64,000 nt of DNA from assembly GCA_039096225.1 (NCBI GenBank), contig JBBPEB010000030.1, positions 186,001-250,000 on the forward strand, written 5' to 3'. This DNA comes from Blastocystis sp. Blastoise. Lineage: Eukaryota > Protista > Bigyra: Opalinata. The notes below the pieces were generated by a model. The model had not been told where the DNA came from. It saw nothing but the letters and a program-made list of their open reading frames with translations, and did no database searches. The position numbers and the translations under genes are program-made. The first letter of the stretch is position 1. Each line of letters opens with the position of its first letter. This document shows positions 36,393-64,000 of the stretch, piece by piece.

Positions 36393-36991
36393 ATGTTTAA
36401 GATCAATTTACCTAATGAAAATTCAGACGATAAAGTTTGTTGTACTCAAGAATGGGGTGTAGGTAATCCTATTTATGATGGTGCTTTATCTATTGTTATT
36501 ATTGGTGCTTCAGGTAACTTAGCTAGAACTAAGACTTATCCTTCATTATTCAGAATTTTTAAGAATAATTTAATGCCTGTTGTTACTAGTATTTTTGGTT
36601 ATGCTAGATCTAAGTTGACTAATGAAGAATTCCGTGAAATGATTCGTAAGGAACTCGATGTATGTTTTATTGTCTTGTTCTTTTTTAAATATAATATTTT
36701 ATTACTTTATATAGGGTACTGAAGATGAAATTGAACGATTTTTAGACAGATTATATTATCATCCTGGTATTTTATTTATTTTTAATTTAAAATAATTAAT
36801 TTATATATATATATATTTTTTATAAATAATAATTTAATTTACTATTCTTTTAGGTGCTTATGATAACGATGAAGATTATTTAAGTATGACAAGTGAACTT
36901 GAAACTCATGAACATTCTATGTGTAAAATTTATATGAATAATACTAAGAATACTACTTGTAGTGTATATTATATTATTATTATTATTATAC

Positions 36992-37034
<43 letters not shown>

Positions 37035-39107
37035 GTTTATTATTAATATATAGTCTAATCGTCTTTTCTATTTGGCTATTCCTCCAAGTCTCTTCATTCA
37101 AGTAGCTACTTCTTTAAATAGTATGTTTTAATGATTCTATTTATTATAGAACGATTACATCTATTTATAATAAAACCATCAATATTTTATATATATTATG
37201 ATACTAATTGTTTTATATATAATATATATAGAGAATTGTAGAAGTGCTGGTGGTTTTAATCATTTAATTATCGAAAAACCTTTTGGTAGAGATTTAACTT
37301 CTTGTAAGGATTTGAATGATCAAATTCTTTCTTTATTTAATGAAGATGAAATCTATAGAATAGATCATTATTTAGGTAAAGAAATGGTTCAAAATCTTTT
37401 AGTTTTACGTTTTGGTAATTTACTTCTTTCTCCTTTATGGAATAACTTATATATTGATAATGTTCAAATTATTTTCAAAGAAAAGAAGGGTGTTAATGGT
37501 AGAGGTGGTTATTTTGATCAATATGGTATTATTCGTGATGTTATGCAAAACCATCTTCTTCAAGTATATATTGTGTTTGTCTAATATTGTTTTATAAATC
37601 ATTTTAATATATATATATAATATTATATACTATTACTTATATTATTATATCTTCAAATTGTTACCTTAATAGCTATGGAACAACCTGTATCTCTAGCTGC
37701 TCATGATATTCGTGATGAAAAAGCGAAAGTCTTAAAAAGTATCCCTCCACTCAAATTAGAAGAAGTTGTCGTTGGACAAGTATATCATTATTATTTTATT
37801 TATTTATTATTATATTATATTATTATATATATTAGTATATATATATTATTATACTATTATATATTTATTTTTATAATTAATATGCTAATAATTGACTACT
37901 ATAAATAGTATGGTCGTGATGAGACTGATAGTCAAGAATCCTACAGAGAAGATCCCTCTGTTCCCGCGGATTCTTTAACTTCTACTTTTGCCGCTGCTAT
38001 TATGCATATTAATAACAATCGTTGGGCTGGTGTTCCTTTCTACTTAAAATGTGGTAAAGGTATATAATAAGTATAATAATAATAATAATTAGTATAATCA
38101 CTATTATTTATTATATCTATACTAGTCTCTTATATACTATCATCATAATTTGTTCTATATAGAATAATATATTCTATATATTTATAAAGGATTGGATGAA
38201 GATAAGGCTGAAATTCGTATTCAATTTAAATCTATCCTTGCTCCTCTATTTGGTCATATTCAAAGAGATGAATTAGTTATTCGTGTTCAACCAGATACTT
38301 CTATTTATATGAAGATGAATGTCAAGTCTCCAGGTATAGTTATATAATTATTATGAAACTTATTTTAATATTTATTATCATTATACACTATATTATCATT
38401 ATATATTCTATTATTATATTATACTCTTTATTATTATTCTTATATACTATATTCTAATACTAAATATTATTTCTATAGGTTTAACTACTCAACCTATGTT
38501 ATCTGAATTAGATCTTACGTATAAACAAAGATATGATTCTGCTTATATTCCTGATGCTTATGAAAAACTTATTATCGATTGTATGAGAGGAGATCATAGG
38601 TATATTTATTATTATTCTTACTTCTAATTCATCATATTCATTATATATATATATATATTATATAGTCATTTTGTACGTACTGATGAATTAGAAGGTTCTT
38701 GGAGAATATTTACTCCTCTTCTTCATCAAATTGAAGTATTTATTTTATTTATTTATTTATTTATTTATATATTTATTTATTTATTTAATCATTTATTTAT
38801 AAATCACTTATTTCTATAACTTTTCATATACAATAAATACTATATGTATATATAAATGAATTCATAATAATATATAATAATTATCTATAGGATAAGAAAG
38901 TTGTTCCTATCTCATATCCCCGTGGTTCTCGTGGTCCTGTTGAAGCTGATCAACTTAGAGATAATTATATATATATTTATAATTATATTATATACATATA
39001 TATTTATAATTATATTATATATTATATACATGTATATTTCATATAGTAATGGTTATATTCGTTCTGAAAAGTATCAATGGAAAGAACCTATATTAAAATC
39101 TGCCTAA
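36393..39107 (+). CDS. G6PD: Glucose-6-phosphate dehydrogenase, 12 exons
   Basis: [49 protein letters not shown]; two junctions are non-canonical (see findings). Confidence 0.96.
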
Positions 39108-39733
39108 ATGAAAAGTACTTGTTATTACTATTAACAATTATATATATGTATGTAATAGTATAAACAACATATATATATAACATATTTTTTATGGATATTC
39201 TCGCTTTTGCTATATATATGTCCTTTTTTGTATGTATTATGATTTTGTTATCATTGAACAATTTGTTTGTTTTTGATTATATATAAATATACATACTTAA
39301 ATCATTTCTATTCTTAAAAAGTCATGTATAATTTAAAAGTGCACGTCAATCGCAGAATAACTTCAAATTTGTAACTAGAAAAAAATATTTTTACAATAAA
39401 TTATTTGTAAAATATATTACTTGAATGTATAAAATGATAACTAGCAATGAAAAACAGTGAATTATAAAAAAAAGTACATGCTATGAAATAGTTTACTATA
39501 TTTTCTAAGAATATCAAATACAGTAGAGAAGATTCTGAAGAATAAACGAAGAATTACTCTTGAAAATGCTGTCAAAACAATTCACTATGTAAGTTTTTGT
39601 TGTCTTCTAATCATAAAATGAAAGAAAAGAACCATATCTTTTTATTACATCAACAAATAAAACATTATAAGCCTGTTCACAATAAATAAACAAAATTAAA
39701 AATTGAAAAAAAAATAGTTTTCTTTTCTTAATC

Positions 39734-41788
39734 ATGGAGTCTATTGTAACCGAAATTCGTAAAAGATTGAATATTCATTACATGCCTAAGTGGTCTGAGT
39801 TACCAGGATTAGAGATACAAGGAAAAAGACTACGTGAAATTCTTGAACAGACATTTGTTTATGGAAATAATGAAATGTATATTTTATATATTAGATTGTA
39901 TATTGATGTATTTAGTGTTGTGATGTCAGGTCCAGAAGGAACAGGAAAGAAATTCTTACTTCATCATGTTTTGAATAATTTACAGATTGAATACTCTGAT
40001 AAAGAGGAAAATCCATTTGATGTCAATAATTATATTAGTGTTTGGTTAGATGGAAGTTATTTAGATGATGATAATTCTGCATTTCGAAGTATTACTCGGC
40101 AATTATCAGATACTGAAATCATGAGAGGTAACTATATTATTTTTTGAATAGTTCATAAAGAATAATTGTTATAGACAAACGAATTCGAAGTAATCAACGA
40201 AATAATTTAGAATTTGTCGAAACAATATCCTTATAAGCGGTATATAATAGTATAGTATATAATAGTATAGTATATAATAGTAGAGTATATAATAATATAT
40301 AATAATATATAATAATATATAATAATATATAATAATATATAATAATATATAATAATATATAATAATATATAATAAAATATAATAATATATAATATGCTTA
40401 TTTTCTTTAATCTATTACTCCTTGAAAGAGGCTGCATTATGTGGATATCCACTATTAATAGTATTAGATGATTTCCCTTCTTTTTGTGATCGTAAGAAGC
40501 AGACATTATTATATTCATTAATGGATTTATGTGGACAACCAAATGTCAAGATTACTGTTGTTTGTATTAACAACGAACCTTCTTCTATACAGAAATTTGA
40601 AAAAAGAATTACTTCTAGGTAATATATATATACATAATTAATTATGATATAATAAATATTTTTATTATTCAAATATTCAATTTAATATATATATATATAT
40701 ATATATACAAAAATTGAATTGTTTTAATTCTATAAATAAGAAATTATATTAAAAAATTATTATACAATTAATTTTTACTTAATATATCTATTAATTATTC
40801 TTATTCATAGATTCTCTCAAAAACAAATTATTTGTATTCCTCCAACATTTAATTCTATATATACATATTTTCAAAAAATAATGGTTCTGAAACCATCTGA
40901 AATTGATTCAGACGTCCTACCTAGTTTATCGAATTTAACTCAATATAATACATATATGGAGAATCTTATTAAGAATAAAACTATCTCTAATTATTTAGAA
41001 CAATTACTGTCTACTTCAGTTATTCCTATAACTATAAGTATCCTTATTAGTATTATTTGATATTATTCTTTTTATCTATTATATTATATACTATTTGCAG
41101 CATTACTCCTTGTATTACATTTATTATTATTTTTTCATTTTTATATGCATATTTTAGTATAACTATGTAGAACTGTTCTTATTATTCTTTTAATAATTAT
41201 ATATAAAAACTATTATAATAATAATTATATATAAAAACTATTATAATAATAATTATATATAAAAACTATTATAATATATATAATTATATAACACTATAAT
41301 AATTATAATTATATATAAAAACTATTATAATAATAATTATATATAAAAACTATTATAATATATATAATTATATAACACTATAATAATAATAATTATATAA
41401 AAACTATTATAGCAACTAGTCTATATTCTATTATTCCTTAATAATATATGTACATTACAACGAATATTATTATTTAGCCTTGAGCAAGTATCTTCTTATA
41501 CTTCGATTCTTTATACATATGAAGACATCCAAAGAGGATATAACCGATTCCTTGATTCTATTAATTCATTATATAATTGCATCACATGTATACTATTCTA
41601 CATTTTTTTGTATTATAATAAATCATAATAATAATTTATCTATATCTTTTATATATATTTATATTTATACTATGCTTATTATAGATTTAGGATTATATGA
41701 ATTATGTTTGTTAATTGCAATCAAAAAGAGAACAGAAAAAACTGATGAAAAATTCAACTTTATTCATATTTATACAGATTTCTTAACG

Positions 41789-41821
<33 letters not shown>

Positions 41822-42272
41822 TTATACTTATTAAGTATCTTATGAAAATCTTTTTTATTATGTATTTAGATGGGTTCGAAAAGAACAAAAGAAATTATCT
41901 ATAAAGGAAATTGATGTAGATACCGCTTGGAAAGTATTTTCTTAATCATTATTTATTATATCAAATACTATTCATATGATTATATATATATAGTGTTTTG
42001 AAAAATTATTAAATTATCAATTAGTTCAATTTACTCCTTCTTCTCATGGATTAGGAAATAAAAATGATATTCCTTATAATATCTATATTAGTTTAAATGT
42101 TACCGTATATATATATAAGCTATTTTTATTATTAAATAAGTATTTTTTATTGATATATGTTTAATATTTCTTTTATATATAGCCATATTATATCAATGAA
42201 ATGATTAAAAGCAATAAGTTACAATGTCCTACAGAAATATCTTATTGGGCTCTTCAATGGGAAGAAATCTAA
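39734..42272 (+). CDS. ORC4: Origin recognition complex subunit 4, 10 exons
   Basis: GPEGTGK, IVLDDF, KQTLLYSLMD, FEKRITSRFSQ, LGLYELCLLIAIK, terminal CPTEISYW. Confidence 0.85.
40225..40418 (+). other. U12-type AT-AC intron in ORC4
   Basis: 5' ATATCCTT, branch TTCTTTAAT, 3' TAC; removal restores the frame VET|SLKEAA. Confidence 0.92.
41038..41449 (+). other. U12-type intron with probable GT-AT termini in ORC4
   Basis: 5' GTATCCTT, branch TTCCTTAAT followed by 7 nt; in-frame join TI(S)TLQRILLF. Confidence 0.7.
41190..41410. repeat. AT-rich minisatellite (about 28-nt TAATAATTATATATAAAAACTATTATAA units) inside the ORC4 U12 intron
   Basis: Repeated AAAAACTATTATAA units are visible. Confidence 0.85.
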
Positions 42273-42647
42273 TTGTTTTTTTGTCATAATGTAATCTTCA
42301 TTCATTCTATGTTCTATTGTAAAGTGTTTTTGATTCATTTCAAGGTGTTTTTATTATTTATTGCATCAAATCTTTTAGCTACTAGTCAGCAATATAGCAG
42401 TTATTATTTTTCAGTATACTAGCAGCACATGACATTTTCTTTTATCCTATTAGCAGACAATGCTACAATCAGTCACTTTTTCAACCAACTTATCGACAAT
42501 ATAACAACCAATTCTGATCACTGTTATCGTCATGAACATAATGAATATATTTTATTTATTTAAATCACAGTTATTTGATAAAAAACACTTCTTTATCCTT
42601 TAAAAAAAATTGTTTTTTTATTTTTCTTTGTTTGTATTCTTTTCAGA

Positions 42648-43730
42648 ATGAGTAAAGGAAAGCCGTCAAAGTCATCTGGAAGATCTAAAGCTAGGAGTTC
42701 AATATCTTGGATATTTCTAGCACTTGTTTTTATCATTGTCATTACATTCCTGTGTTATGCCGGACAAGCTTGGACAAAACAATCAGAAACACAAAACAGT
42801 AAATTTTCAACGATTTCCAAGAAGTCTAAGAAAAATCATCATTTAGATTCAGGAACTCTTACTATGTCATCCCATGTACCTCATGATGGTACTTTATATA
42901 CGTATGTTTTTTTAATTGAGAATTTGTTTGTGGTACAATTATATATTTATATATATATTAATTTTAGGCAAGGTATTTTTTTTTATGATCAGAATACATA
43001 TTATGAGAGTGGTGGTTTATATGGTCAATCTCGAATTCAGAAAGTTAGTTTTCCAGATGGTATTGTTTTAAAACAATATACGTTTCCTAAAGAGATTTTT
43101 GGTATATAGTAGATTCTATATATGTTTGTATTTTCATTTGCATATGATATAATGAATATATTATAATAATGTTATATGTGTTAAATATAATAAATAAATG
43201 AATATTTTATAGGTGAAGGAATAACATTAGTGAATAATACTATATATATGTTTACATGGAAAGAGCATAAAGGTTATAAATTTGATTTAGATTTGAATTT
43301 ACTAGAAGAATTTACATTTAGTACTCGTACTGGTGAAGGTTGGGGAATGACTTATGATGGTATATCTATAGTTGTAAGTGATGGTAGTAATAGTATAATG
43401 TTTTGGGATCCTAATACATTAAAAGAAACAAAACGAATAAGTGTTCATTATCAAAGTGGAAAAACTGTAGGATATTTAAATGAATTAGAATATATTAATG
43501 GATATATATATGCTAATGTTTATTATCAAGAAATAATAGTGAAGATTAATCCTTTAGATGGTCAAGTTGAACAAATACTCGATTTATCTTCTTTACGTCC
43601 TCTTTTAGGTGATAATTCTGGTTATTCCGCGGAAGTACTTAACGGAATTGCATATGATGGAGTGAATGATACTATTTGGATTACTGGAAAACGATGGTCT
43701 AAAATGTTTGGAATGAAATATCAAATATAA
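42648..43730 (+). CDS. Type II (plant/bacterial-like) glutaminyl cyclase with N-terminal signal anchor, 3 exons
   Basis: YTQG, YESGGLYGQS, FGEGIT, FTWKE, EGWGMT, SDGS, LNELE, VLNGIAYD, TGKRW. Confidence 0.92.
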
Positions 43731-44068
43731 TATATTATATATATATATATAAATTTCATATTCCTTGTTTGTATTATTATTATATATATAAATTTTCTGG
43801 TTTCATTAAAGTTATTATTTATTAGTAGATTGTATTGTTAAAGAAAAGAATAAAAATTATTTTAATGTACATAATACAATGGATTCAATTATATAAACAA
43901 AAATAAAAGAAATAGAGATGTATCTCACAATCATCTTTATAATTAATTAAAGAAAAAAAAAGATATTTTTATAAAATATAAATTATAAAAAAAAAGTAGA
44001 GTAATATATAAAGAAATCAACTATTTATATATATTTTATTTGTTGAAGAACTAATAAAAATTAAAATA

Positions 44069-44250
44069 TTAATTGGAAGAAGAACTAGGATGATATTTTC
44101 CAAATAATCCAGCAGTATCTTCACCATAATCCTATATATATATATAATAATGATAATAAAGAGAAAGAGAAATATATATAACTATATATAATTATATATA
44201 TACAATATTGATAACAGCGAGAATAACAACTGCCATAATAATAATTAAAG

Positions 44251-44281
<31 letters not shown>

Positions 44282-45300
44282 ATGAGGATATTAAGAATAT
44301 ATTATATATATACAGCAGTCCACATATAGATTTGATAATCTACAACTTCAGTTATATTAATATTAGTATCCGGTAGAGATCATACAATATATATTCATAG
44401 TGATAATATAATAATAAAGATAATATAATAATAAAGGTAATATAATAATAAAGATAGTTTAATAATAAAGATAGTTAAATAATAAATCTAATAATAAATA
44501 TACGTGTTAAAGAATGATAAGTAGAAGAAGAATTAAAGAGAACCATAGAAATAGTTGTTTTGGGGAAACCATTAATAGTCTAATAAAAATTTAATAAATT
44601 TATAAGTGAATAAAAAAAAATAAAATAAAAAAAAAAATAAAAAACTATAAAAAGAATATAATTTTTCTTTTAAATATATATACGTTTTCTAATACAGTAG
44701 TAGAGACAGTAGATTTAACATAAACATAATGAAATGAAGAAGGAGACGAACTAATATCAGCATCTAAAGAGGCAAACATATCTTCTTCATTAGAATAAGT
44801 TTTCATTTGATATCCAGTTGGACAAGTAGTATTATCAGCAGAATAGCATATATAATTAGTAGTTGTATTATAAGTTTCAGGAATAAAATTCAATTTCCCA
44901 TAAGGAATTTGAGCGTATTCTACTTTTCCAATATCTGTTGTATTCAACGTTTCTATATATATACATATAACAATACATATAATAAGAAAAGAATGAAAGT
45001 AGAAATATCAATACGATTCATAGATTAATATATTTAAATACCTAAAGATTGTGAAGCAAAGTGAATAGCAACTACATGTTCAACAGTGTCAAAAACATCA
45101 CAAACAGGCATTTGGGTTTGTTTGAATGATGCATCCATACCTAATAAGGAATTCACATATGAAATATATTCTGAAGGATAGAGACTGTAGAATGAGGTGG
45201 AACTCTTCAAGTAATTGGCATGATCATGCATGAAAACATCGTATTCTCCAAAGGCTAATGAAACGAAAGAAACTACAAGGAAGAAAATCTTAAATGACAT
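44069..45300 (-). CDS. ATP6AP2/renin-receptor-like V-ATPase accessory type I membrane protein, 6 exons
   Basis: Signal peptide; C-terminal YQIYMWTALALIIIMAVVILAVINIDYGEDTAGLF resembles the ATP6AP2 TM and tail. Confidence 0.6.
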
Positions 45301-46242
45301 CTTATTTGGTTTGAAAGAATTATCAAGAAATATATGGGATAATAAAATAAAAACCTATAGATTTGGTCTTTTTTTTGTTTTTCATGGTTTTCTATAGATT
45401 CATAACGAAAATTCGTTTTTTATTAAAAAGAAAATAGAGCTGTTTTTATTATTTCAAAAACCATAAACTTTATAGAAGTGAATGTCTCCTAAGTATTCTG
45501 TATCTTCTTTTGATTCAAACTCATTACTCGATATATACATTGTTGCTATATGAAATCCATTAGAGATTAAACGACCATTTATTCTTATTCAAGTCTATTA
45601 TACTTTGATATATTGGATAATAGGAACGTGATATGTGAAGATACCGAATACTGAGAAAATATGAATAAACGGTGAAATTCAATATTATTTTTCTCAGTTT
45701 TTTAGATTTCTTATTTATTTTATTTTTCTAAGTTTGAAATATATTTGAATATTCAGTGGATACGTTGGAAGTGAAGAGTTAGTACTATATTTCTTATTCA
45801 ATCTTTATTAAATGTAAAAGAGAGTCTTTTGATGTTTTTATATGAGTTTTACTTTTTTTGCTTGATTTCCTAGGATCTGTGTACTATAATTATTTACAAT
45901 TATAAAAGAATTGAGATTGGTATGGAAAATGTACCCAATAAACTAGTTCAATACTTACTAAAAATTGTTTTTAATCACTTCTTCTTGGGTATTTCTGAAA
46001 TATATACTATCTCCTCATGATATATGATATATATGTATACTAATAACGATTATGAGAGTTTGTCAAGTGACCATTTCTTTTGCATATATCTTTTTTTATG
46101 TAATTTATGTGATGTTATGCGATAGAAGATAGAAAAAGAGGATGAAAATTAATTGAAAGTAAGTATGAAATGAGTAAGGAGAGTAGATATTGTGATTGAT
46201 AATTGAATGATTGTTTTCTAATCAGAGAGACTTGGGAATCTC

Positions 46243-46584
46243 ATTGGTTATATGAAGAGATATATCCAATCAGTTTGTAGATGGCGTAGTCTTGTTCGTA
46301 ATTAGGAGATGTTTTCATTCTCAACGTTGTATCCAATGAATAGACTCTTTGAAAAGAGTTGACGGTTCTATTGGTTCTTTCAGATATTAGAAAATCAAAT
46401 TATTTTTGTTGTTCTTTAAGGAATGAATGGTTGTTATAGACTAGAATCTTTGTTTTATTGGCCAATGTTTTCATAACCCAATCAATGCGGAATTACCTCT
46501 TTGTTGCGAATGTTCTTCAAGATGACGCGTTGCCTTTTTACTCTTAATGCTATTCTTCTAGGGTTCGTCGTGGTATTTGATTGG
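46243..46584. promoter_or_regulatory. Cluster of eight CCAAT/ATTGG boxes upstream of the HSP20 gene
   Basis: Motifs at 46243, 46266, 46333, 46370, 46457, 46462, 46478, 46580. Confidence 0.5.
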
Positions 46585-46797
46585 CGTTTCTTCCCTTTTG
46601 AAGAACAAGTCAGAAAGAAAAGTGATCGATAATTTATTAAAAAGTACTTTGATATATATACCGTTTTTAACAGAATCCATATACTCCAATATTTTTCATT
46701 TTATAGATCAGACACATATATTGACATAATATTTTTTAGAATATATTTTTTTCTTTCTATTACTAATTGCTATTTTTGTATTGCTCACATACTAATC

Positions 46798-47923
46798 ATG
46801 ACTGGAACTACTTCTGGAAGCATCAAACACAAAAATCCTTCTTCACACTCTGTTAATTCTCGTACTAAAACAGCACATAAGGGATCTTCACCTAAAATGC
46901 CTATTCCTCGCTATAACTATTATTCAATGCCTCAAGACACTTCAATGCCTTATCTTTTATCTACAAGTCAAATTCCATCTACTAATCCTTTATATTCTCA
47001 AGCTTCTATTCCTGTAGAAGATCCAAGCAATCTCTATTACATGAAAACAGCTACTCCTTGCTATGGAATGCTTCCTAGTAGTCCAGTCAATACTATAGAT
47101 CCATATTTTCCTTCTATGGTAGTACCTCCCTATACTTTAAATCCTGTTGCACAAGAAATGAATCCTATATGTTCTTCATCCGTTCAACAACAACCATCTA
47201 TTAGCATAATTCAATCAGATACTGTAGAAGTATTTATATTATTTTTATTTTTAATATTATATATATTGTTTGTATAAATTAGATTTATGATACAATAGTT
47301 TTAATTATATATATAATAAGAAATTTATATATTATACATATGTTTTTATAGTTTCAAGATTGTTATAAGACTTTTGTTGATATTCCTGGACTGAGTGAGA
47401 AAGATATTAACATCGAAGTTGAAGGCAATAATATTGTTGTTAATGGAAATCGTACATTATCTTATGCTAATTCTAGAAGTATCCTTTTTAAAGAACGTTT
47501 TTCTGGTCCTTTTCGTATATGTATTCCCGTATGTTTTTTATAATTTATTTTTTTAAGTTATATATTATTATAAATATTTATGATATTAAATGTATAATGT
47601 AAATATATTATTAATAATATAAATATTTATGATAATAATAAATATATTAATATATTAATAATATAAATTTTTTAAATAATAATACATATATAAATATATT
47701 AATAATATAAATAATAATGCTATATATAAAATAAAAAAGGTAATAATTACCCTTTTTATAGTTTCTTCCTGAGAAAGTTGATGTACAGAATATTCGTGCA
47801 TTTATGGAGAATGGAGTATTAACAATTCATTTTAAGAAGATGATGAGACATATTAAAGAGAAACAAACTCAATTATTTCGAAAAATATCATGTCGAATTG
47901 CTCCTCAGAAAGTTATGTATTAA
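46798..47923 (+). CDS. HSP20/alpha-crystallin domain protein with long P/S-rich N-terminus, 3 exons
   Basis: VDIPGLSEKDINIEV, ERFSGPF, LPEKVD, IRAFMENGVLTI. Confidence 0.85.
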
Positions 47924-48929
47924 AGTGATGTGATTATTTAATTATATAGAAAGAATTATTATTCATTTCTTTTCTATTTTATAAAACATAATTTATCTGT
48001 ACCATATAATATATTCTATACAAGTTTCTTATTCTTCATAATAGAATGAATACTCTTTCTTATACTATTATTTTTTTTATATAATTTTTATATATTACCT
48101 TTTGATTTTCTTTCTTATATTTCTATATATATATATATTGTGAGATATTTATTTATTATTGTTAGTATAGCTTTTGTCGACTTTTCATGGTCGTAAAAAT
48201 AATTTTCATATTTACTTTTGATTCGTATATATTCTTTTTTTTAAATAACTAATATCCTATTATCTATTTTTTTTTTATTTGATACTATAAATAAATATCT
48301 ATATATATAATAATAATAATAATGATAACAATAATTTTAGATATACTTTGACTTATTTCGTGGTAATGCCTTTTTATATCTATTCTATTTTTTTTTCTAT
48401 TTATATTTGAAATTCATTTATTCAAAGTCTTTTTTTTCTTTATATATATTTTTATATTCTCTATTTATTGTATTATAGTTTTTCTTTTGACATTTCTATC
48501 TGCTTTTCTTTTCATATAAATAATATATTATATATATATATATATATATCATTTAATATATTATTATATATATATTTCTATAAATGTACTTTTGATTTTA
48601 TAATAACTTTTGATTCTTTATTTATATATACTTTTGTTTTCTACTATTTTTTTTGTTCATCTTTATTCTCGTTCTTTTGTTTATTGGTTGTTTTGTTTGA
48701 TTATTAAATTGAATTTATTAAAATTAAAATAACACATGCATGTATTATTTTATACATTAAAAGAGTGACTGTCTTCTTTTATAGAAAAAGTTATAAAGAA
48801 TATTACCACGGTAATTATCTTCTTTCTTTATATTTTTTAATAGATAATCATGAATAAAATGAATATCACTTTTTCTACAATTGTATTTTATTATATTGAA
48901 TTTGTTTTTTGTATACTATAAATTAATTT

Positions 48930-50180
48930 ATGTCTTCTGAAACTAAAAAGAGAAGAGCAGATTCTACAGATACATATTGTGGAGAAACTACTAATAATTC
49001 GATGTTTACTCCATTTGACATGTGTGATCCATCTATTGGAGAATTTTGCAGCGCTTTTATTCAACAAGGTCTCTATGATTTCACAACTCTAGATACACGA
49101 TCACAATGGAATTATCATGCAGTTAATTCTCAAATTCAAAAGGTTTTACAGAAAATTCCGTATATTTTGTTTATATACACGCTATTTTTATTTCTATAAT
49201 ATCTATTTCTTATTCAGTTAATAAAGATCCTATAATTGTAAGCTTTTCTTTTATTTAGTGCTATAATGTATCCAGGATCTCTTTCTAAAGTTCAGGTAGA
49301 CTGTATTGAATATTCTGATTATTTTGCTGCTTATGTTGATATTCCTGGAGTACCCAAAGAATCACTGGATATATCTATAGAAGAACCTTATTTGTTTATT
49401 CAAGGAAGTCGTAATTTAGAATATGGAGAAAATGCTGATTATTTACATCAAGAACGATTTAATGGACCTTTTATGGTTTGTATTCCTGTATATCTATATA
49501 TTTTAATTTCTACTATCTATTAATTGCTATAATTCTATATATATTCATGCAATATATACTTATTCTCTATATTATATATTCTATAGATTAACTCTCATGT
49601 TATTGATTTGAATACAGTGAAAGCTTCTCTTGAAAATGGTATATTAACTGTTGTTTTTAATAAAAAGAACGATAAAGAATCTAAATCAAGTCGTACCGTA
49701 GAATTCATTGACTCCTCCTCTTTAAATAAAACATTATCAAATAATAGTTCTTCTAGTATATTGTTGCATCTATGTTGTTAAAATTATTTTATATATGAAT
49801 ATTATAGATTTAAATATTATTTGTTTATTTATTATAGATTTAATTAAAAATAAATATTATATATTTAATTGAAATTATATAAATATTATATATTTAATAT
49901 TATATACTATTATTTCTACATATATATATTTCTTTTAGATTCTTCACGGACTAATAATACCTTTATTACCGGTCCTTCTTTTAAAACACAAACTATATTT
50001 TCTAATAGTAATACGCCTGTAGTAACACATATAAATGATAATAATTCTATGAATACAAATAAAGATACATCAGCCACTTCTGAAAAGAAATCAGAAGAAC
50101 AAATGCATATATCTCCATCTATATCTACTGATTCTTCTATTCATATTACTCTTCATTCTAATTCTTCTCCTCAAGACTAA
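48930..50180 (+). CDS. Second HSP20/alpha-crystallin domain protein, 4 exons
   Basis: VDIPGVPKESLDI, ERFNGPF, VKASLENGILTV; shares the intron position after CIP with its neighbour. Confidence 0.85.
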
Positions 50181-50707
50181 CAATAATTATATATATATTA
50201 TAGAATTCTATTATTCAATAGAATTTATTAGTATTATTTATATATCAATTTTTAAACTTTCTTTTATTTTTATTTACCATATTATTTTCCCTATTTTATT
50301 TTTGTCATTTTTTTGTCTAGTTTAATTATAGTTGTTTTTAAGTGTTTTTGTTTTTTAAATAATAATATCTTCAAGATAATAAGAGATAATGATATCAAAC
50401 AGTGTATTCATCACATATTAAGATTCTTAGATAGTTATTATCAATGTTATATATTATATGTTAATTCTTCAAATTATTCAGAAAGATATTATTACTTATT
50501 AATATTTACAAAAAGGAAACAAAAAGGAATATCACAAGTAATTATATGTAATTAATCCAAACAATATGATTCCAATACTTTTGATTCATTAATAATGTTC
50601 AATTTAATAAATAACTAAAAAAAATTGTAAAAACGGGTACAATATAACAAACTGAATAATGAATATAGAAATATATCTATATAAACATATTTGATAACAA
50701 ATAAATA

Positions 50708-52339
50708 TTAATAGTTCTTATCTATTCTTTGTTTTTTAGCTTGTCTTCTTCTTTCTTCTGCCCTAAAGAATGGATGTATATGACGAACTGTCTTCTTTAT
50801 AACATGATCCGTAGAAGACATGGGTTTTAATCCTGAATTTGAAGCTGAACCCGATAATTCACTGTAAATAAACAAAGAACCACCTGATAAGGTACTAATA
50901 TTTGATTTTGATTTCCCACTTTTTGATCGTTCTCTTCCTTCGTAATCTCCACCTAAACTCATCTTTATTTGTTTACGTTCTTCTCTTTCTAATTCTTTAT
51001 TCTCATCAGATTCTTTTATACCAATATTTAATAGTTGTTCTTCTAAATCTTGTTGATATGATGTAATTTCTTGTTCTGTAATTAAATTCATAATAACTTT
51101 ATAAGTATATCCTTGAGCAGTTAAATATTGTTGACGTTTATCAGCATAAAACATATCTTGAGTATCTGAAGAGACTAATGAATAGAAATAAGCATTATAA
51201 CCATATGTAGATCCTGTTTTAGGACGAAGAATACGACCAAGACGTTGTGCTTCTTGTCTTCTAGATCCGAAATGTGAAGCTATTTGAATAATAACCGTTG
51301 CTTCGGGAAGATCAATAGATGTATCTCCTACTCTACTAATAAAAAGACAATTAAGTTTACTATTGGTTCGGAATTCTGATAAATATCGATTACGTTCAGT
51401 CTATATAATATAATATAATATAATATAATATAATATAATATAATATAATATAATATAATATAATATAATATAATATAATATAATATAATATAATATAATA
51501 TAATATAATATAACACTATATATATACAGCTGACACTTTACCATAAATCATGGGACATTTCATACTTTTAGCATAATATATTAACGCAGTAATATCATCA
51601 CTAAATACCAAGATCTTATCTCCTCTCTTCTGATGATAATCAATGAGATATTTACATGTCATAAATTTAGTAGGATTTAAAATACATAATTTTCGTTGAA
51701 CATCTTTCGAACTATTTAAATAATTTTTATAGAATAAAGGCGTCATTGGACACCACACTTCAAAACATCGCACGGTAGCCAAATAACCTTTCTAAATAGG
51801 GGATATATATAATATAAAATAATATAATATAATATAATCTATAATATAACTATAATATAATATATAATATAATCTATAAAACTATCAATAGTATAATCTA
51901 TAATAAAAATAATAATAATAATAATAATAATAATATATATATACACTTGTAAGATCCATCCAATTGGCTTCAAAGAGTCTTGGTCCTATAAGTGTATGTA
52001 AACTCTCAATTTGATTATCTTCACGAACGAGAGTGGCCGTTAACCCTAATTTACAATGACATCGGAGCATATTCACTACCTATATAATGGTAACATATAT
52101 ATATATATGATAAAATACGAAAATAATAATAATAAATATAATAAATATAATAATAATAATAATAATAAATCTTACCATTTGGAATGTTTTTGCAGGGACG
52201 ACATGGACTTCATCCAGAATAACAAGTCCCCATTCTCTCTCTCTAATTTGATTCATAATAGCAATAGATTTCTCATTAGATTTATGAGGAGATAACATTG
52301 GATATGTTGTTACTAATACACAACATTCTGGAAGAGCTT

Positions 52340-52375
<36 letters not shown>

Positions 52376-53296
52376 TATAGGATAAAAATAAAGTATTAAA
52401 TCTTTTAAATAATATATTACTTTTGAAGCACTACTTAATTCGATAATATTCTCATCTTTTATTTCAGACCATGTATGATATTCACGTATCCACTATATAA
52501 TCATATAATCATATAATAATATATATATATATATATACTTGAGTAACAGAGACTATACTATTACAAAGAACAATAGTACCTTTCTTCATTGTGGAAGTAG
52601 CTGTTACTCCAACTAATGTCTTACCAGCACCACAAGGAAGAACAATAATACCGGATCTTGCCCGCCCATTTCCGAACATTTTACTAAGTGCCCGCTCTTG
52701 ATAAACACGAATGTGTGTTGAGGGTCTTAAACGGATATCTAAATTAGGAATACTCTATAAATAAATAAAATAAATAAAATAATAATAATATATATAATAT
52801 ATAATAATAATAAACATAGTAAATTGAATAAATAATAAAAAAATAGAATAATTTACCTTATCATTTCTAAAATCATATTCTTCTAAAAGTGGATAATTGA
52901 GTTTTAAGCATTCTTCTTTTACTTTAGGTAATTTTTTCTCATCAATATAGAATGAATCTACTTTTGTACTGAGTTCATAAGATTGTTCGCTTTCTTCTTT
53001 AAAGATTGAATCATCATCAATTGAATTTCCCGCTTTCTCTGATTTGGCTGTATTTTGTATACCAGTCATAGATGAATCATGTATATCTAAATCAGCACCT
53101 ACTTTCTATAAACAAATATATAATAATAACTTTACAAATATATAAATATAATTACAAATTAATAAATCTATACATATAAACTAAAATTAATAAATATAAA
53201 TATAATAAAAACTTATTAAGCATACTAGAACTTCAAGGTTTTCTTCTAATTCCTTTTGAACAATACTACTTTGAAATCCTTCTGTTGTTTCCTATT

Positions 53297-53341
<45 letters not shown>

Positions 53342-54281
53342 CAATAATAATTATAATAATAATAAATTTAATAATAATAATTCTATATACTGTATTATCT
53401 TTATTAATTTTAGCATCTGCTATAATCGGGTCATTTAATAATTTACGTAAAATTTCAATATATGGACTTTCAATCTATATAGAAATATAAAGATCATTAT
53501 AAAATATAAATTAATAAAAACATATATATACTTGATATTGATTATCTTTTAAGACTAATTTGACTTTTCCATGAGTACTTGTATTTAACTGAATATCTTT
53601 AATCATATCTTCTGTTAACGATACTTTAGATAAACGATCCAATACCTATATTATAATTATGTTTTTATTCCTAATATAAACATCAAAACGATTAATTTCT
53701 TTTAAATAAATAATATTAACATTATAAATATCAACTTATGAAATACATTATAATTACCTTGATAATACTCTCTGTACTTAAACCTACTGAAACAGCTGAA
53801 TATAAAGATGAATTTGTAATTTGATATTCATGAATATGTTGAGGTCTTGATCTTGGTTCTGCAATAGCTGTCAAGAACTCTACTGCCTAGAAATAACAGA
53901 AAATGAAAACAATTTCAATATAAAAAAAATGAGAGCAAAACTTACTTGAGTATATAAAGGTCCACCAGTTTCCAAATAAACTCTTTTATTAGGACAAACC
54001 CATAAGGGTCGTTTCTCATGATCTGGTTTTAATACTAATTTTGAAAAATCACAGAAATGAGAAACTATAATTCTATAATGGAATAAATAATTAAAATAAT
54101 TACCATCATCTATTCTTCCAGACTCATAATCCTCATCTTCAAATTCAGAATCATCCTAATTAAAGAAAAAATTACATCCGATGTAATTATAACCAAATAC
54201 TTCATTATCTACATAATCTTCATCGGTATTCCTCCTTCCTCGTCTACCACTTCCTATTCTATGAGCACCAATTGGAGGCAT
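50708..54281 (-). CDS. ERCC3: TFIIH helicase XPB, 14 exons
   Basis: [52 protein letters not shown]. Confidence 0.97.
51403..51512. repeat. (TAATA)n microsatellite in an XPB intron
   Basis: Perfect pentamer array. Confidence 0.95.
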
Positions 54282-54961
54282 TTATCTATAATTATCCTAA
54301 TAAAAAGAAAACACACAAAATTCTATGACTTAATTTCTTTTTCAACTGAATAAAAAAGAAATATTCGTTAAAATTCTTATTATATAGAAATATTTTGTTA
54401 TGTGAAGTCAAAAAATGATTATAATATATCTTATAGTATAGTTGAATCATCTATAGTGAAGAAACGTATAAATAATATGAAGAAAATGAATCATGTGTAT
54501 TACTTCCATACTATTTCAACTTAATTTTATTAATATATAATTGGGACAACGACTAATGATTCACTTTAGTCTTCTTTTTCATAATACACTTTTTTTCACA
54601 ATTTATTTTGAAATTTTACTTTTTTTTTCTTTGTTTTTTTATTCATATCACTCAAACAGTCAAAGATTATACTATAATTTAGTTTTAATAAATATTGAAC
54701 AATAAAAAGAAAGAAAGATCAGTGAAGCTTTTATAACATCGTCTCTTTCTAAAGCTCATGAAACATCATCTCAAGTTCTTCTTTATTTACTCTATATCCG
54801 TTATCTTATATCATATTTTTTGCTGATATTTATCAGAAAAAAACATTATTTGTGATTAAAACTGCGTCATCAAATCACTTTTATAATTTGGCTGTATATA
54901 TGATATTCATGATTTAACGACATCAACTATTTTATTAATAGTCTTCAAGTTATTCTTCAAA

Positions 54962-56990
54962 ATGAGATTGAGGACTCCTTTTATAATACTGGTTGTAGCT
55001 TTATTATGGATACTTGCATATTTTTATGTGGCAGCTTCTATATCTAAAGGAACATTTAAGCAATCTTCGTCCAATAACAAAATAAAATTTCATCAGAGTT
55101 CTGAAAAGAAAATAGTGGATAAAGAAATGTTAACATTTTCTGTTTCTGATAAGAAGGTTTCCTATGTATCTACAGCAATGACAAAGAATAACGAAAATGT
55201 ATTTTTGTTTATTTTTCTCTAACATATGTTCTGAATTTTCAAAAATAATGTATATTGTCATCTAGTTTGAACAAGTATCAACTCTCAAAAGTCAACAAAT
55301 CGGATATCCTATTGTTTCTAATGAAGAAACTAGAGAAGTTCATAAAAGTATACTTGAGCCTAGTCCAATTCATAATTTAAGACACTCTCAAAATTCTGTT
55401 ATTCAAAATTCTTCTCCTTCTCAACAAGATTCAGTTATCCATGAAAGTAAATTCTTTAAATAGTTCAATTTCTTTATTTTTGACATATTTCTTTATATTT
55501 TATGAATATTATTTATAGGTGAAAAGACAGAATCATCTTTATCTCATAATACTATACATAAAGAATCAATATCAAGTTCTACTTCTTCTTCTAAATGGTC
55601 TGAAAAAGATAAATTAAATCATAAAAATAGAATTCAAAATAAAGTATATAATAAACCTTCTCAAATGATTCATTATCAGCCATTATCATTAAATCCTATA
55701 TATGGTCAAATACAATTTCATAAACAACCGAATATTCCAATTATAAATTCTTCATTAAGAACTGTTGATACTTCTAAACCTTTAAAACCTATTATAAATA
55801 ATCCTCATAAAGATGGTATAGAAACAGAATATATATTTGAATATCCATCATTTGTATTACCACCTCCTCTTAATGTTGAATCTACATTAACTGCTTCTTC
55901 ATTTACAAATGCAGGATTTTATCAAATGGTTCTTGGTAGTAGTTATCAACAATGTATACAAGATTCTATTTATAATTCAAAAGAAACATCAGTAAATATG
56001 TTTCATAGCGTTAATTGTAAAGAGAATCCTGGATTATGTGGTAATTCAAATACGTGGTTAACTTATTGTCAAAATCAATATCATATAGGAAAAATATGGA
56101 TAATAAAAAATTCGAATTTACCTATGAATATTGATTGTGGTTGGAGTAGTCCTTATTATCCAAGTAATTTTAAATCTTCTATGACTTCTAGACAATTAGA
56201 AGGAAAATATGTATTTTTACCTATTCCTGATGGTTGGTCTATACAACATTTTGTTGATGGTGTTTTACCAAAATTAGTTCAAATGGAATCCTTACTAAAT
56301 GATCCGAATGTCAAATTTCTTGTTGAATTACAAAATAATCGTTTTCCTATTGTTGAAAAATTATATAATCGACTTGGTATTTCCTCAGATCGTTTATTAT
56401 ATAGTAAACAATATCAAGGTACTATACATTTTGAAGAATTAATATTTCCTTGTATTACTCCTCCTATTCATCCTTATCTTTGGCAACGTGCTCAATATTT
56501 ATTGAAATTACCTCATATTATTAATCCAAATCTTCCTGAACCTGATACTATTGTTTATATATCAAGAAATCAAGGTACATATAATGGAGGAAGAAGAGTA
56601 GTAAATGAAGAACAAATCTTAGAATATTTACGTGATTATTTATCAGATACTCCTTATAAATTAGTATTATTCCGTGCTAAAGATTATCCTGATTTAGATT
56701 CTCTATTCGAATTCTGGTCACATGCTAAGATTGTACTCGGTCCTCATGGAGGTGCTTTTGCTAATGTTATTTTCTGGAGACCTCATACAGTTCTTTTAGA
56801 ATTCTTATATAATAATCCTGGTTATATAAGTCAACATTATAATTATCGTATGATGTTTTATTTAGAAGCTACTATGCTAGATATGAATTATCATTCTGTT
56901 CTTTGTAATGCGATTAATGGAGGAATTAACCCTGATCTGGATTGTGATTTTAATACTATTAAAACAATTCTTGATAATTATATCAATTAA
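54962..56990 (+). CDS. GT61-family glycosyltransferase, type II membrane protein, 3 exons
   Basis: N-terminal TM, Ser-rich stem, HFVDGVLP, YISR, RRVVNE, GPHGGAFANVIF. Confidence 0.82.
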
Positions 56991-57281
56991 TTACTTTTTT
57001 TTTTCTCTCTCTCTTCATTCATATTTGTTATTATATTATTTTAAATATATATAAATATATTGTCATTTTTTTTCACATACTATCTACTTTTTTGATACAT
57101 AACTTATTATGTATTTGTTTTTCTCTATTTTTTGATGTATTCTATTAATTTTCTTTTCTTACATCTCTCTCTAATGAATAAAAGCAAAACAAATTTTTCT
57201 TTACACAGAATTGTTGTATTTATAAATAGAAGATATAATATAAATAAGATGATATTACAAAATAAAAGGATTGCTATATAA

Positions 57282-57315
<34 letters not shown>

Positions 57316-57330
57316 TATTAAAAATAATAA

Positions 57331-60221
57331 TTACTTTTTTAATTGAGCTTTAATTTTTGTCATCGTAAGAATAAGAATTGTTTTTAATGGTTTTCTACGA
57401 TTTTCTTTTAATTTACTAATTGAACACCATATATCTCCATGAGTAGGGTGTGCATCTTCAAATCTTTGTAATAATTTATTTTGATCTTCTTCTGTACCAT
57501 ATTCTAATTCAAATATATAATAAATAGCCCAATGATCACCAATATCTGAGTTAATAGCTAATGAACGATCCATCCAAAGACGTGTTTTCTCTACAAGTCC
57601 ACTTGACCAGAAACGACGGGCTGCAAGCATAATAATATAAGGATCTTCACTATATTGAGATAAAGCCTTTGTAATTAATGTCTTTTGTTGAGGTTTTGGA
57701 GCATTCAAAATATCTTCAACAATTAATCGTCCTATAGAGTATTTTATAAAGTAATAAGAATTATTATATAGTTATAATCGTATTTATTCATGATTTTATT
57801 TATAAAATAGAATATAAATATATATATATAATAAGAAGAATAAACTAATAATAAGTATATATAAAAAAAGATTATATAAATTTTGATTAAATATAAAAAG
57901 AGATCACTATAAAAATACCACTAGATGGATTTTCTTGAAGTGCTTTCGATAATAATTGAGTCACTAAACTATTATTTCCTTGTTCTCTTTCAAGCTGAAT
58001 AGATTCCAGCCAGATTTCAGTTGATTTTGGATTCTTGATACGAGCAATTTCTAATAAAGAACGTGCTTTAGCAACGGAAGTAATACGTTTTTCTAAACGA
58101 ACATAAAGAAGCCATAAAGGAGTCGATTGTTGACAACGTTGAAGACCATCTCTTTATATAGTATGTTATAGTATAGTATAGTATATTAAATAAAAGAATA
58201 AATGAATATCTAAATATATATATATATATATTTATAAATAAGAATAAAAAAAAATTATACCTATAGAATTTTCTAGCTTCAGAGAATTGTTCTTTTTCTT
58301 CTTTTAGTTGTCCAAGCATCATCCATAATTTATCATACGAAGGATATTTATCTTTTGCTTCTAATAATATTGTTTCTTCTTCTTGATAATTATTTAACTC
58401 CCATTCTAATAAAGCACTCTTCATCCAAACACGTGGACTCTTACAACTAGCACGTGATTTTGCAAGGATATCACGAGCACGATCAAAGTTATTATTTTCA
58501 TATTCAATCTATATATATATGAGATATTATTTGAAAAATTAAATTAAAAAAAAAAATAAATTAATCATTAATTTATAAATATTTCAAAATATAATATATA
58601 TACTTGCATAGCTGCAAGCCAGATTCTTTCAGAAGAAACAAATTCCTTATTAGAATTATTAATAAGAATAGCTTCTTCTAATACTTTTCTAGCCATATCG
58701 ATATCATGTAATTTTCTATATTGTAATTTAGCAGACATAAGCCAAAGGAGTTCACTATGAGGACAATGAGACACAGCTGTCTTTAAGAGAGAAGCAGTAG
58801 AAGAAGGAGTACCATATTTCTCTTCTAATTCCGTCGACTTTAACCATATATCCTCACGATCTATATATATATATAATGAAATATAGAATTATAAAGCGTT
58901 ACTTAAAAAATATAATAAATAAAAAAATATATATAATAGAGAAAATAATAATAAATATGATAAAAAATAATAAATATAATAATATACCTGGGAATACACC
59001 TAAAGTATAAGCATAAATAGCTCTTGCAGTTTCAATCGATCCATTATTAACACAATTACTAGCATCTGCAAGCCATGTTCTAGAACGATCTTGTTTCTCT
59101 ACACCAATATCTAAGACATTCTTTATAATACAACTACATGTCTCACGAGCACCGGCTTTTTCCATATTTTCAGCTTGTTTGATCCAATCATTCCGATTAA
59201 TTACAACCTATATGATATTCATGAGTAATATATATAAAGTATAAATATACTATATACAGAATATATAAAAACAATAATAATAATAATATACATTATTCGT
59301 TTGAAGACTTTTGACAGCTCTTTCAATAATAGTATTAATTCTATGTATACTTCCATTTGTCTCTTCTAATTGAGCAGCAGTAAACCAAATAGTGGGCTCT
59401 GTAGGTAATGCTTTACGGGCCTATAGGGGTAGGAGTATATAGAATATAGGAAATATAAAGTTAATAAATAGTTATATAGAGTATAGGAAATATAGAGTAA
59501 ATAAAAATAGTATATAATAAACAAATATTAATAAATAAATAGTTATGTAGAATATAGGAAATATAAAGTTAATAAAAATAATATATAATATATATAAATA
59601 TATAAATATATAATATAATATATATAAATATATAATATAATATATATAAATATATAATATAATATATATACTTGATTAAGAACTTTTCTTGCATTTTCAT
59701 AAGTTTCTAATTTAGCAAGTGCCAGCCATAACTCAATACTTTCAGGGACATTTTCAACAGCACGCTGAAGTAAAATTAAGGCAGATTCAGGAGGTTCTAG
59801 TTCAATAGCTGTTCTCCATAATAATACAGAATTAGGAATAAACTCAATTGCTTTCCAAAGAACTCTTTTTTTCTTATTAATATCAGTTTCTAATTCAGCA
59901 GCCTATATATAATTATTATTATTATTAATTATAGTATAGTATATATAAAAAATATATACATATATATAATTATTTTAATAAAAATAATCATAAACAAGTA
60001 AAAAAGTTTAAAAAAAATATATAGATCAATGAATATATATAATATATATATACGTGTAACCATATTTGAACTGAAGTAGGTAGTCTCTTAACAGCATCAA
60101 TAAGAACAATCTTAGCATTTTCAGGTGTTTGTAATCTAGCTGATTCTAACCATATTTCTTCACTCTTAGGACAACTTTCACATCCTTTACGAATAATCTT
60201 ACGAGCTTGAGCTACTTTACC

Positions 60222-60252
<31 letters not shown>

Positions 60253-61975
60253 GTATAATATAGAATAAGAGAATATTTAATATATATATAGATAAAGAAT
60301 AGAATATATAATAAGAAGTAGGTAATGAAAATAGTTAAAATGAAATAATTATATATATATCTATAATTTCATTTAAGAATTAAAAAGATATAAAATAAAA
60401 AAAAAGAATAAAATAAAAAAAAAGAATAAAATAATAAATTTAAAGAATAACAAAATAATAATAACAATAATAATAGCACTAAAATACCTGCTGCTTCTTC
60501 TAATCTTGCGTAACTAATCCATCCTTGTTCATTTGTAGGATCTGCTTTAACTAAAGAAGCAAATATAGTACGTGCCTTTTTAATATCTCCTATTTCTGCT
60601 TCTGTATTAATTTTCATATCATTTAAAGAAGTCATATAACCTTTTGGATCAACTACAGTTTGACCTGTTAAACTATCTCCTTTCTTCTCTAATGTTTGAC
60701 CAAGTAACTATATAATATAATATAATATAATATAATATAATATAATATAATATAATGATTATTTAAATATATAAAAAAATGTGATTATTTAAATCAATTA
60801 TTATAAAATAATGGAATAATTATATCGATTTATAATAATTTAAAATAAAACTAAAATAAGATTCCTATAATATTATACTTGTTGACGAGCACTTGAATAA
60901 TTCGTCGATGTTTCTGTACCTGAAGTCGATGTATATCCACTTGGATCTACTATATAAGGAGATAATGCATTCTGCATACGTCTTGCTTCTAATAGAGAAT
61001 CAGGAGCAGGAGTAAAAGACTCCTTCTTCTTCGATTGTCTCCATTTTAATGATTTATCACCTATATCTTCGATAGAATACCATTCTTCTTCAGTCATCTT
61101 CTCTAAGGGTCTCTAGGATAGATTATATATTATATTATATAATATATAATATATAATATATAATATAATTCATATTAATATAATATAAAATTTCTATAAT
61201 GAATAAAATAAGAAGAACAAATTTCTTTTAAATAAATAAGACTTATAAAAAAAAAACTAAAAAAACTTTTTTATGAATAAAAAAGTATTAAAAAAAAATA
61301 TCATACCTTTTTATCCACTAAAACAGATCGAATATCTGTATTTAAGAAAGGGCTATTTGTATTATTTTCACTATCAGTAGACTTCTTTTTATTTTTACGA
61401 TTCATCATCGATTTATCAATAGCCTACAGAGATATAATAAATAACAAAAAAATATAAATATCATAATAACATTAAATTTATAAAATTTACATCGAAAATA
61501 GCTTCAGCCTCAGCATCCTCGGCATCATATTCATTACTATAAAAAATAATTAAGCATGCTAGAATTATAAATAGATATTATTGTTTACTTTTCAGTATCA
61601 ATGCCAATATTATTATCACCTGATTCATCAAATGTTATATCCTCGTTAGTGCCCTATATATTCATTAAAAATAGAATTATTTTATATAGTATTTGAAATA
61701 AAATTCAATTAAAAAAAAAGATTCACGTACACCTTGATCACTTTGAACGGCGGGGCCAATATCGAATCTGTAAAATAAGAAAAATTCATAGATAGAAGTA
61801 ATAACATAAATATACCTTGTAACAAAACCTGTTGCACCACGCCCTTTACCAGGTTCATAACCAATTGGAGCTATTATAGGGAATATATAGAAATATTATA
61901 ATTTCCTATCAATTAAATAAGCATACCTTCAATATTATCATATGTTCTTGGACGTTTAGGACCTATTCCAGACAT
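57331..61975 (-). CDS. PRPF6: Pre-mRNA splicing factor Prp6 (HAT/TPR repeats), 16 exons
   Basis: [58 protein letters not shown]. Confidence 0.96.
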
Positions 61976-62130
61976 GTCAATTTTACTTTATGAATAAATA
62001 ACTCTAGAATGATATAAGTTATATATATGAAGAGTTGTCAATAATATGTATATATATACAATTCAAAAAAAGTATAAAAAGAATGACTTTTATCGATAAA
62101 AAGAAAATGTATTAAAAAAAGGAAAATTAC

Positions 62131-62249
62131 TAGAGAATTACAAAAAACTAGAGCTAGGAAAAAAAGTGGGCGTAATTTTGTCGTTTTTTTGTCTTTTTTG
62201 AGTGGAAATTTGTTCTTTGTTAAAAAAAGTGGTTTTTTGTAATTCTCTA
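62131..62249. mobile_element. 119-bp hAT-like MITE
   Basis: Perfect 18-bp TIRs TAGAGAATTACAAAAAAC (62131-62148 and 62232-62249) flanked by the 8-bp direct repeat AAAATTAC (62123-62130 and 62250-62257). Confidence 0.8.
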
Positions 62250-62787
62250 AAAATTACGGTTTTAATTTAATTTTGAGTGTTTTTGTGAGAATTCCCTATA
62301 AATAATCTAATTTTTAAAAATCAAGTTATTCTTTTAAAGTTGAGAAATAATGTATCAAATACATTAATAAATCGGTCGGTGAATGTTAAGGTATGGCTGT
62401 ATTAGGGATTATTTTTTTTGGAGTAATGGGAAGAATATGTCTTTTTCCATTTTGTTCAGAATCCTTTGATTTATAAAATTCTAATTGAAAATAAGTATTT
62501 ATGATATGTAAGAATATTATAAAATATGGGTTTATGATGAAATAGAAAAATAAACAATAAAAAACTATTCCAGATATTATAGAAACAAAGAAATTCATTA
62601 TATTTGATGCTAGATATATTATGTTTATTGGAGACAATTTAAAATAAATTAAAGTATCCAATAATACAAGAGAAACTAATAAAATGATATAAAACAATAG
62701 CAAATAATAAATAGAAAACAAAAAATATAAATAAGAAAAAAAGAAACTACCCTACTATAAAAAATAAATAATATAATATATAGAAAG

Positions 62788-64000
62788 TTAATAACAATTA
62801 AGTTGTCTTCCGTCACTATCATATTTTAATTGTTTATTAAGACTACGTTTGAAATCAGGATCATCAATAGAAAATAGTGGTTCTTTGATAGTAAGTATGA
62901 CTTCATCTTCAAGATTTTCTTTAATATAGTCAATCATTGTTGTTGGAGACATTTTTTTGTCAGAATGGATATAGTAACGAAGTTAAAGAAATAAAAATGA
63001 TTTTTATATAAATAAATTATTAATTATTTATATTATAATAATATATATATGGAAAATAAGACTATATGATAGCAAATAGATTATAAAGGATATAATATAA
63101 GCATCATTAAGTTTATCAAAAGGATCATTTGATATAGTTTTACTAGTAAGAATACTATTTCTTAATGATTCAGTCACTAATGGATTATTACGAAAAGAGT
63201 AATCAAGTTAAAGAAGACTATATGATGTTGATATATATATGTTATAATTATTATTATTATGATTAATATGATTAAATTATTATAAATATAATTATAAATA
63301 ATAATAATAAAAATAGTGAAAAAAAAAATGAATAAAATTTTAAATATAAATAAAATAGTAAATAGAAAAAAAAGGATATATATTCTTTATAGTATCCATC
63401 AAATATTTTATCAAAGGTATTCATACATACAAAATGATTTAAGCCACATGTAAATATAGATTTAATAGATGTAGCATCATTCATAGAAGGATCTTCAGGA
63501 ATAAGTTGTAAGTTATATTGAATAGGATTTGCTATATTATGACGAGCATCACGATAATCTTGACGTATATAAGGGATTTCTTCAATTGAATCAGAAATAG
63601 GTTTTGTTTGAGAAGATATTTGTGTATTTTGAGGTAGAGATGGATCCATTCGTGGTCTTCTTGTATTTCTTCTTTGAGGAAGAGGAGGTAATGTGGGTTT
63701 TACACGTAATCTACGAGGTGTCTGTGTAACAAGTGAATTTGTTGTAGTTGTTGAAGGAGATGAAGATGATGATGAAGGAGTTATTGAAGGAGATGAAGAT
63801 GATGATGAAGGAGTTGTTGAAAGAGTTGTTGAAGGAGTTATTGAAGGAGTTGTTGAAGGAGTTATTGAAGGAGTTGTTGAAGGAGTTATTGAAGGAGTTA
63901 TTGAAGGAGTTATTGAAGGAGATGATGAATTCTCCAAAAATGGAGAATTATAAGAATATATTGAATAATAATGTCTAGCTATATATATAAATATTATAAA
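62788..64000 (-). CDS. 3' part of an unknown protein with mucin-like (PSIT/PSTT)n region; last two introns are AT-AC
   Basis: Exon ending at 63380, exon 63094-63198 and exon 62788-62973 join in frame to TAA. Confidence 0.75.
62974..63093 (-). other. U12-type AT-AC intron
   Basis: ATATCCTTT...TTCTTTAAC-TTCGTTAC; in-frame DAYI|YIHSDKK. Confidence 0.92.
63199..63379 (-). other. U12-type AT-AC intron
   Basis: ATATCCTTT...TTCTTTAAC-TTGATTAC; in-frame YKEY|SFRNNP. Confidence 0.92.
63755..63925 (-). repeat. Coding 12-bp tandem repeat (Pro-Ser-Ile/Thr-Thr)
   Basis: GAAGGAGTT(A/G)TT units on the + strand. Confidence 0.9.

Follow-up and report, generated by a model that had tools for sequence, protein, structure and literature searches.

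Four U12-type introns in a tortoise Blastocystis: probable members of a genus-old minor-intron set

Minor introns in Blastocystis and other lineages

To our knowledge, de novo gain of minor introns is well documented in Physarum alone. In Blastocystis subtype 1, 346 of 35,412 introns (1%) are minor, or 253 by intronIC (PMC5608401; PMC10639083). AT-AC introns make up 77% of this set and 49% are in phase 0, as against 22% in phase 0 for ancient minor-intron sets; a possible recent gain has been proposed, and Larue and Roy called for further Blastocystis genomes to explain this phase-0, AT-AC-rich set (PMC10639083). In animals and plants, U12 introns represent less than 0.5% of introns, are mostly GT-AG and avoid phase 0, and distance-dependent choice of the 3' site is established for the mammalian ones (PMC3584512). 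No minor-intron analysis of tortoise Blastocystis genomes was found in the literature.

Blastocystis sp. Rus-B ("Blastoise"), isolated from a Russian tortoise host, has a genome of 33.3 Mb with 23.1% GC and 8,547 genes (PMC12129017). The window analysed here is a stretch of 64,000 nucleotides (G000:C20:186001-250000), and the genome searched comprises 33.34 Mb in 34 contigs. Comparison contigs stem from human-gut metagenomes and are assigned to Blastocystis, not to human (33-49% GC). Homology searches were done per exon, spliced models being joined for local alignment only.

The four introns and the genes that carry them

Two genes of the window harbor the introns, two in each:

39734-42272, + strand: ORC4 gene, 10 exons, 445 amino acids with both U12 introns used
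40225-40418, + strand: U12 intron A, AT-AC, 194 nt, phase 0; donor 40225-40232, branch motif 40403-40411
41038-41449, + strand: U12 intron B, GT-AT as assembled, 412 nt, phase 1; donor 41038-41045, branch motif 41434-41442
62788-63978, - strand: final three exons of a gene for a GT77 nucleotide-diphospho-sugar transferase that has a Ser/Thr/Pro-rich insert
62974-63093, - strand: U12 intron C, AT-AC, 120 nt, phase 0; branch motif 62990-62982
63199-63379, - strand: U12 intron D, AT-AC, 181 nt, phase 0; branch motif 63215-63207

All four combine an RTATCCTT donor with a TTCYTTAAY branch motif, whose end lies 7, 7, 8 and 8 nt from the 3' end in introns A, B, C and D, the branch A being followed by 8-9 nt. 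The pairing within two genes and the 7-8 nt spacing, both reported in the initial annotation, are confirmed, as are its count of three AT-AC introns and no GT-AG one (termini AT-AC, GT-AT, AT-AC and AT-AC) and the phase 0 of all three AT-AC introns (phases 0, 1, 0 and 0). In a scan of the window, neither the donor alone (13 versus 11.3 expected) nor the branch motif with AC alone (2 versus 0.57) rises above chance, while the joint pattern of donor, AT-rich spacer, branch motif and AC occurs 3 times versus 0.12 on average with 60 permuted donors. Intron C contains in-frame stops; within 45 nt, neither C nor D offers an in-frame GT-AG alternative, and no GT is found within 45 nt of the intron D donor. 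That removal restores the frame is seen against the ORC4 orthologues for A and B and against a GT77 paralogue for C and D. Judged by motif, reading frame and orthologue alignment, which bear out the coordinates first assigned to them, introns A-D are genuine minor-spliceosome introns.

The gene order G6PD, ORC4, glutaminyl cyclase-like (window 36300-43730) is conserved in L108, a Blastocystis lineage of 40% GC. The deposited ORC4 protein (KAK8792782.1, Blastocystis sp. Blastoise) carries the PF14629 ORC4_C domain; its model is spliced at GT-AG junctions, 40216-40430 and 41050-41419. Compared with U12 splicing, it loses 7 residues of a gap-free conserved helix and gains 14 hydrophobic ones. The U12 junctions yield the 445-residue protein, colinear with its orthologues, and splicing of intron A restores the 7 residues in a gap-free alignment to all of them. 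The deposited model hence appears mis-spliced at both sites. Sequencing run X1 contains 0.39 of the ORC4-region words, close to the spliced-transcript expectation and compatible with either junction choice. For intron B, colinearity with the orthologues favors the GT-AT end at 41449; the alternative end, an in-frame AC at 41458, would remove three residues. The first G of this intron matches the next mRNA base, so an AT-AT intron overwritten in polishing could explain its GT start.

Comparison of positions with the orthologues locates both ORC4 sites in other Blastocystis contigs. Site A holds an AT-AC intron in L108 and a GT-AG one in L112, 30 nt long, in which a remnant resembling a U12 branch site precedes the AG by 6 nt, and no intron in L113, L114 and L117; site B is AT-AC in L108, L113 and L117 and AT-AA in L114. 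Since both sites are occupied in other Blastocystis lineages, both positions are older than the tortoise lineage. Neither is occupied in the ORC4 genes of Daphnia and a cercozoan; in the latter, a GT-AG intron of phase 0 lies one codon away from site A. With the positions missing from these two outgroups, a gain in the Blastocystis stem is possible.

The GT77 gene runs past the window end, to about G000:C20:252400. Initially described as having no recognisable family, it does contain a GT77 domain (PF03407, E=3.5e-11, on L024:1108-1383), encoded by an upstream exon just outside the window. A paralogue on G000:C21 displays 56-60% identity, its three 3' exons matching to their ends. At the sites of introns D and C, gaps of 69 and 72 nt, respectively, separate these matches within a single stop-free frame; the inserts (G000:C21:1079495-1079563 and 1079669-1079740) are of 3n length and fall outside the strict U12 pattern. 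The paralogue supports the predicted exon boundaries of introns C and D and suggests that their positions predate the duplication; its inserts may have been converted or exonised, or may never have become introns. A search limited to proteins of similar length returned no orthologue of the GT77 3' exons.

Machinery, density and intron ends across the genome

The genome contains one candidate gene each for U11, U12, U4atac and U6atac. U11 (62.9 bits) and U6atac (63.8 bits) score over cut-off; U12 (46.8 bits, E=6e-7) and U4atac (29.7 bits) stay below it with correct pairing. U4atac and U6atac form a perfect 12-bp duplex, against at most 10 in 300 shuffles, and by computed pairing U11 and U12 are complementary to all four introns. 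Of two proteins sought, a SNRNP25-type domain (PF18036) is just over cut-off and a PDCD7 piece (PF16021) is weak and below it. An intact minor spliceosome is supported by the four snRNAs. In U6atac (L001:1501-1617, - strand) the 5'-splice-site box reads GCCGAGA instead of the AAGGAGA of the Rfam consensus and can pair little with the donor. This box was discarded as a novelty of the lineage: it recurs in 60 metagenome contigs of 33-60% GC, mostly non-Blastocystis-like at the 5' end, and is so widespread that the Rfam U6atac consensus is not universal. A 63-nt AT-AC candidate lies on the opposite strand (L001:1355-1417, + strand), about 80 nt from the end of the U6atac gene.

The initial annotation put U12 introns at about 3% of the introns it could splice, four of about 130. 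This figure stands locally, with 4 among some 110-160 introns predicted in the window by a self-trained, unvalidated HMM, and fails as a property of the genome by motif counts and by tiles. Extrapolated, the window rate predicts ~1,560 strict AT-AC introns and ~1,560-2,080 overall. The strict genome pattern (U12 donor, AT-rich spacer, branch motif and AC, in five length bins of about 40-200 nt) gives, against a reversed control, 89/24, 141/20, 82/31, 42/18 and 35/12 AT-AC hits per bin. The total is 389 versus 105, an excess of 284 +/- 22 that still counts some loci twice and takes in multi-copy genes and one repeat. Branch motif plus AC at the spacing of the initial annotation occurs 561 times genome-wide, chance included, versus 566 and 486 at other spacings, and donor-only and branch-only counts are mostly chance. 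Extrapolating these motif counts, with longer introns and relaxed motifs allowed for, we estimate 300-600 U12 introns genome-wide; at 1.5-2.6 introns per kb (same HMM), minor introns would be about 0.4-1.2% of all introns. An unbiased sample of 20 spread 10-kb tiles (200 kb) holds 1 strict and 2-4 relaxed candidates, versus 3 strict ones in the 64 kb of the window. With 450 U12 introns in the genome, at least four per window has P=0.012, or ~6 of 521 windows, within-gene pairing ignored. The 3% density is a local cluster and a small-sample effect, not a genome property.

Genome counts are inflated by a multi-copy gene family with up to three U12 introns per copy, found on C8, C13, C14, C23, C26 and C31 (e.g. 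C13:1255849-1260168). In addition, a near-identical 91-nt stretch resembling a U12 AT-AC intron occurs at G000:C3:984011-984101 and, on 9 contigs, at 12 or more further places; it is probably the end of a dispersed element or, less probably, an introner-like family.

The most populated length bin contains 4 strict GT-AG minor introns versus 4 in the control, as compared to 141 versus 20 for AT-AC. The AT-AC share in this bin is ~95% or more, GT-AG being almost absent, and the dominance is genome-wide and seems to exceed the published 77% of subtype 1. Counted by eye, ~60% of ~58 genome loci end 7-8 nt past the branch motif (range 6-11), and other Blastocystis display 6-9 nt: genus-wide, the spacing is slightly shorter than the mammalian one. 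If phase 0 had its subtype 1 frequency of 49%, three phase-0 introns out of three would have P=0.12, and phase 0 among major introns here is 39-52%. In window and tiles, major donors start with GTAT in 197 of 246 cases, their consensus GTATAT being exact in 131 of the 246, and G is rare at +5.

Three introns lacking U12 signals also have odd ends by homology: GT-AA and TT-AG in G6PD (37564-37656 and 38965-39046, + strand), and AT-AG at L014:2753-2869 (- strand). The G6PD orthologue in L108 has GT-AG at the same two positions. In all three, the deviant base is that of the spliced mRNA, and both DNA and RNA short reads were used for polishing and annotation (PMC12129017), which makes RNA-driven polishing the likely source; the alternative source would be a relaxed rule for the terminal G. 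Canonical intron ends showed no general exon-like overwriting.

Origin of the introns and comparison with known systems

The introns of the window are probably ordinary members of a genus-old Blastocystis minor-intron set, kept vertically with losses and minor-to-major conversions. In a scheme that extends the computed pairing to splicing, U11 would bind the RTATCCTT donor and U12 the TTCYTTAAY branch site, U4atac/U6atac/U5 would then join, and the 3' end would be the dinucleotide ~8-9 nt past the branch A. The set, some 300-600 introns and near 1% of the total, would date from the base of the genus or earlier. A sieve may have shaped it: as GTAT-type major donors resemble GT-AG minor donors, GT-AG minor introns could convert easily and leave behind the AT-AC ones, which would need two terminal changes. 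The residue would be a nearly pure AT-AC set with a phase spectrum like that of major introns. From one contig, L112, we infer the minor-to-major direction at site A. Four introns in one window would reflect within-gene pairing, chance and window selection.

The same donor resemblance would also ease gain in the major-to-minor direction, and a less probable reading, to which we give perhaps one chance in a handful, is that Blastocystis, and the tortoise lineage especially, still makes AT-AC minor introns, which would form a young, phase-0-rich set. They would arise by major-to-minor conversion, by intronisation of AT-rich coding sequence or from donors carried by a mobile element. The absence of the ORC4 positions from the outgroups, the stop-free 3n inserts of the GT77 paralogue off the strict U12 pattern and the 91-nt U12-like stretch at 13 or more places all speak for it. 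However, both testable introns are older than the lineage, which refutes for the ORC4 pair the lineage-specific creation first proposed; the paralogue gaps indicate positions older than a duplication at 56-60% identity; the U12 total is no higher than in subtype 1; and the repeated hits look less like independent gains than like gene copies or a transposon end. Were it true, the birth of minor introns could be watched directly, given RNA-seq for three genomes from tortoise and several from human hosts.

Far less credible are two further readings. The motifs might be unused, the major spliceosome cutting at nearby GT-AG sites as in KAK8792782.1. This model comes from a pipeline favoring RNA-supported introns, which counts against the U12 junctions in ORC4, and single motifs are at chance level in this AT-rich window; yet the model breaks the conserved ORC4 helix, U12 motifs stand at identical positions in orthologues, and introns C and D offer no in-frame GT-AG option. 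Equally improbable is an origin as ancient eukaryotic U12 introns that predate the radiation of stramenopiles. DNA-replication genes, to which ORC4 belongs, are enriched for minor introns (PMC3584512), and the cercozoan intron lies one codon from site A, but no position is shared exactly with Daphnia or the cercozoan, and the phase-0 bias is opposite to that of ancient sets (22%; PMC10639083).

These introns extend the AT-AC, phase-0 minor-intron pattern to the deep tortoise branch of Blastocystis. At the two ORC4 positions common to the genus, introns have been lost, termini have changed and a GT-AG counterpart occurs; the comparison also indicates that deposited gene models misplace U12 junctions. 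The result adds a data point to the open question of minor-intron gain and not a new system.

With Physarum polycephalum, the introns share a narrow branch-to-3' window and ends including GT-AT, AT-AA and AT-AT; massive gain, a changed branch motif with a compensating U12 snRNA and phase-0 avoidance are found in Physarum only (10.1101/2020.10.12.336362). Instead of Physarum-type thousands, ~284 strict minor introns above control (389 raw) are counted here, and the branch-pairing region of the U12 snRNA is that of the Rfam consensus, with no sign of co-evolution with the branch motif. Animal and plant U12 introns have in common with them the RTATCCTT donor, a TTCCTTAAC-like branch site, the lack of a polypyrimidine tract and a 3' end set by distance, the optimum being 11-13 nt there (PMC3584512), whereas the introns here most often end 8-9 nt past the branch A. 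Of the ruler-like 3' site selection initially proposed, branch anchoring is supported, while its newness is not: it is a textbook U12 property (PMC3584512). The claimed novelty of density and termini also falls, as the density is like that of subtype 1 and the AT-AC bias, like the phase-0 bias, is already published (PMC10639083). Subtype 1 is the closest match, with ~1% density, AT-AC enrichment, favored phase 0, four snRNAs and several introns per gene. Compared to it, the minor introns here are longer (mostly 55-200 nt versus about 40) and strict GT-AG ones look rarer, at ~5% or less in the tested bin versus ~23% non-AT-AC in subtype 1.
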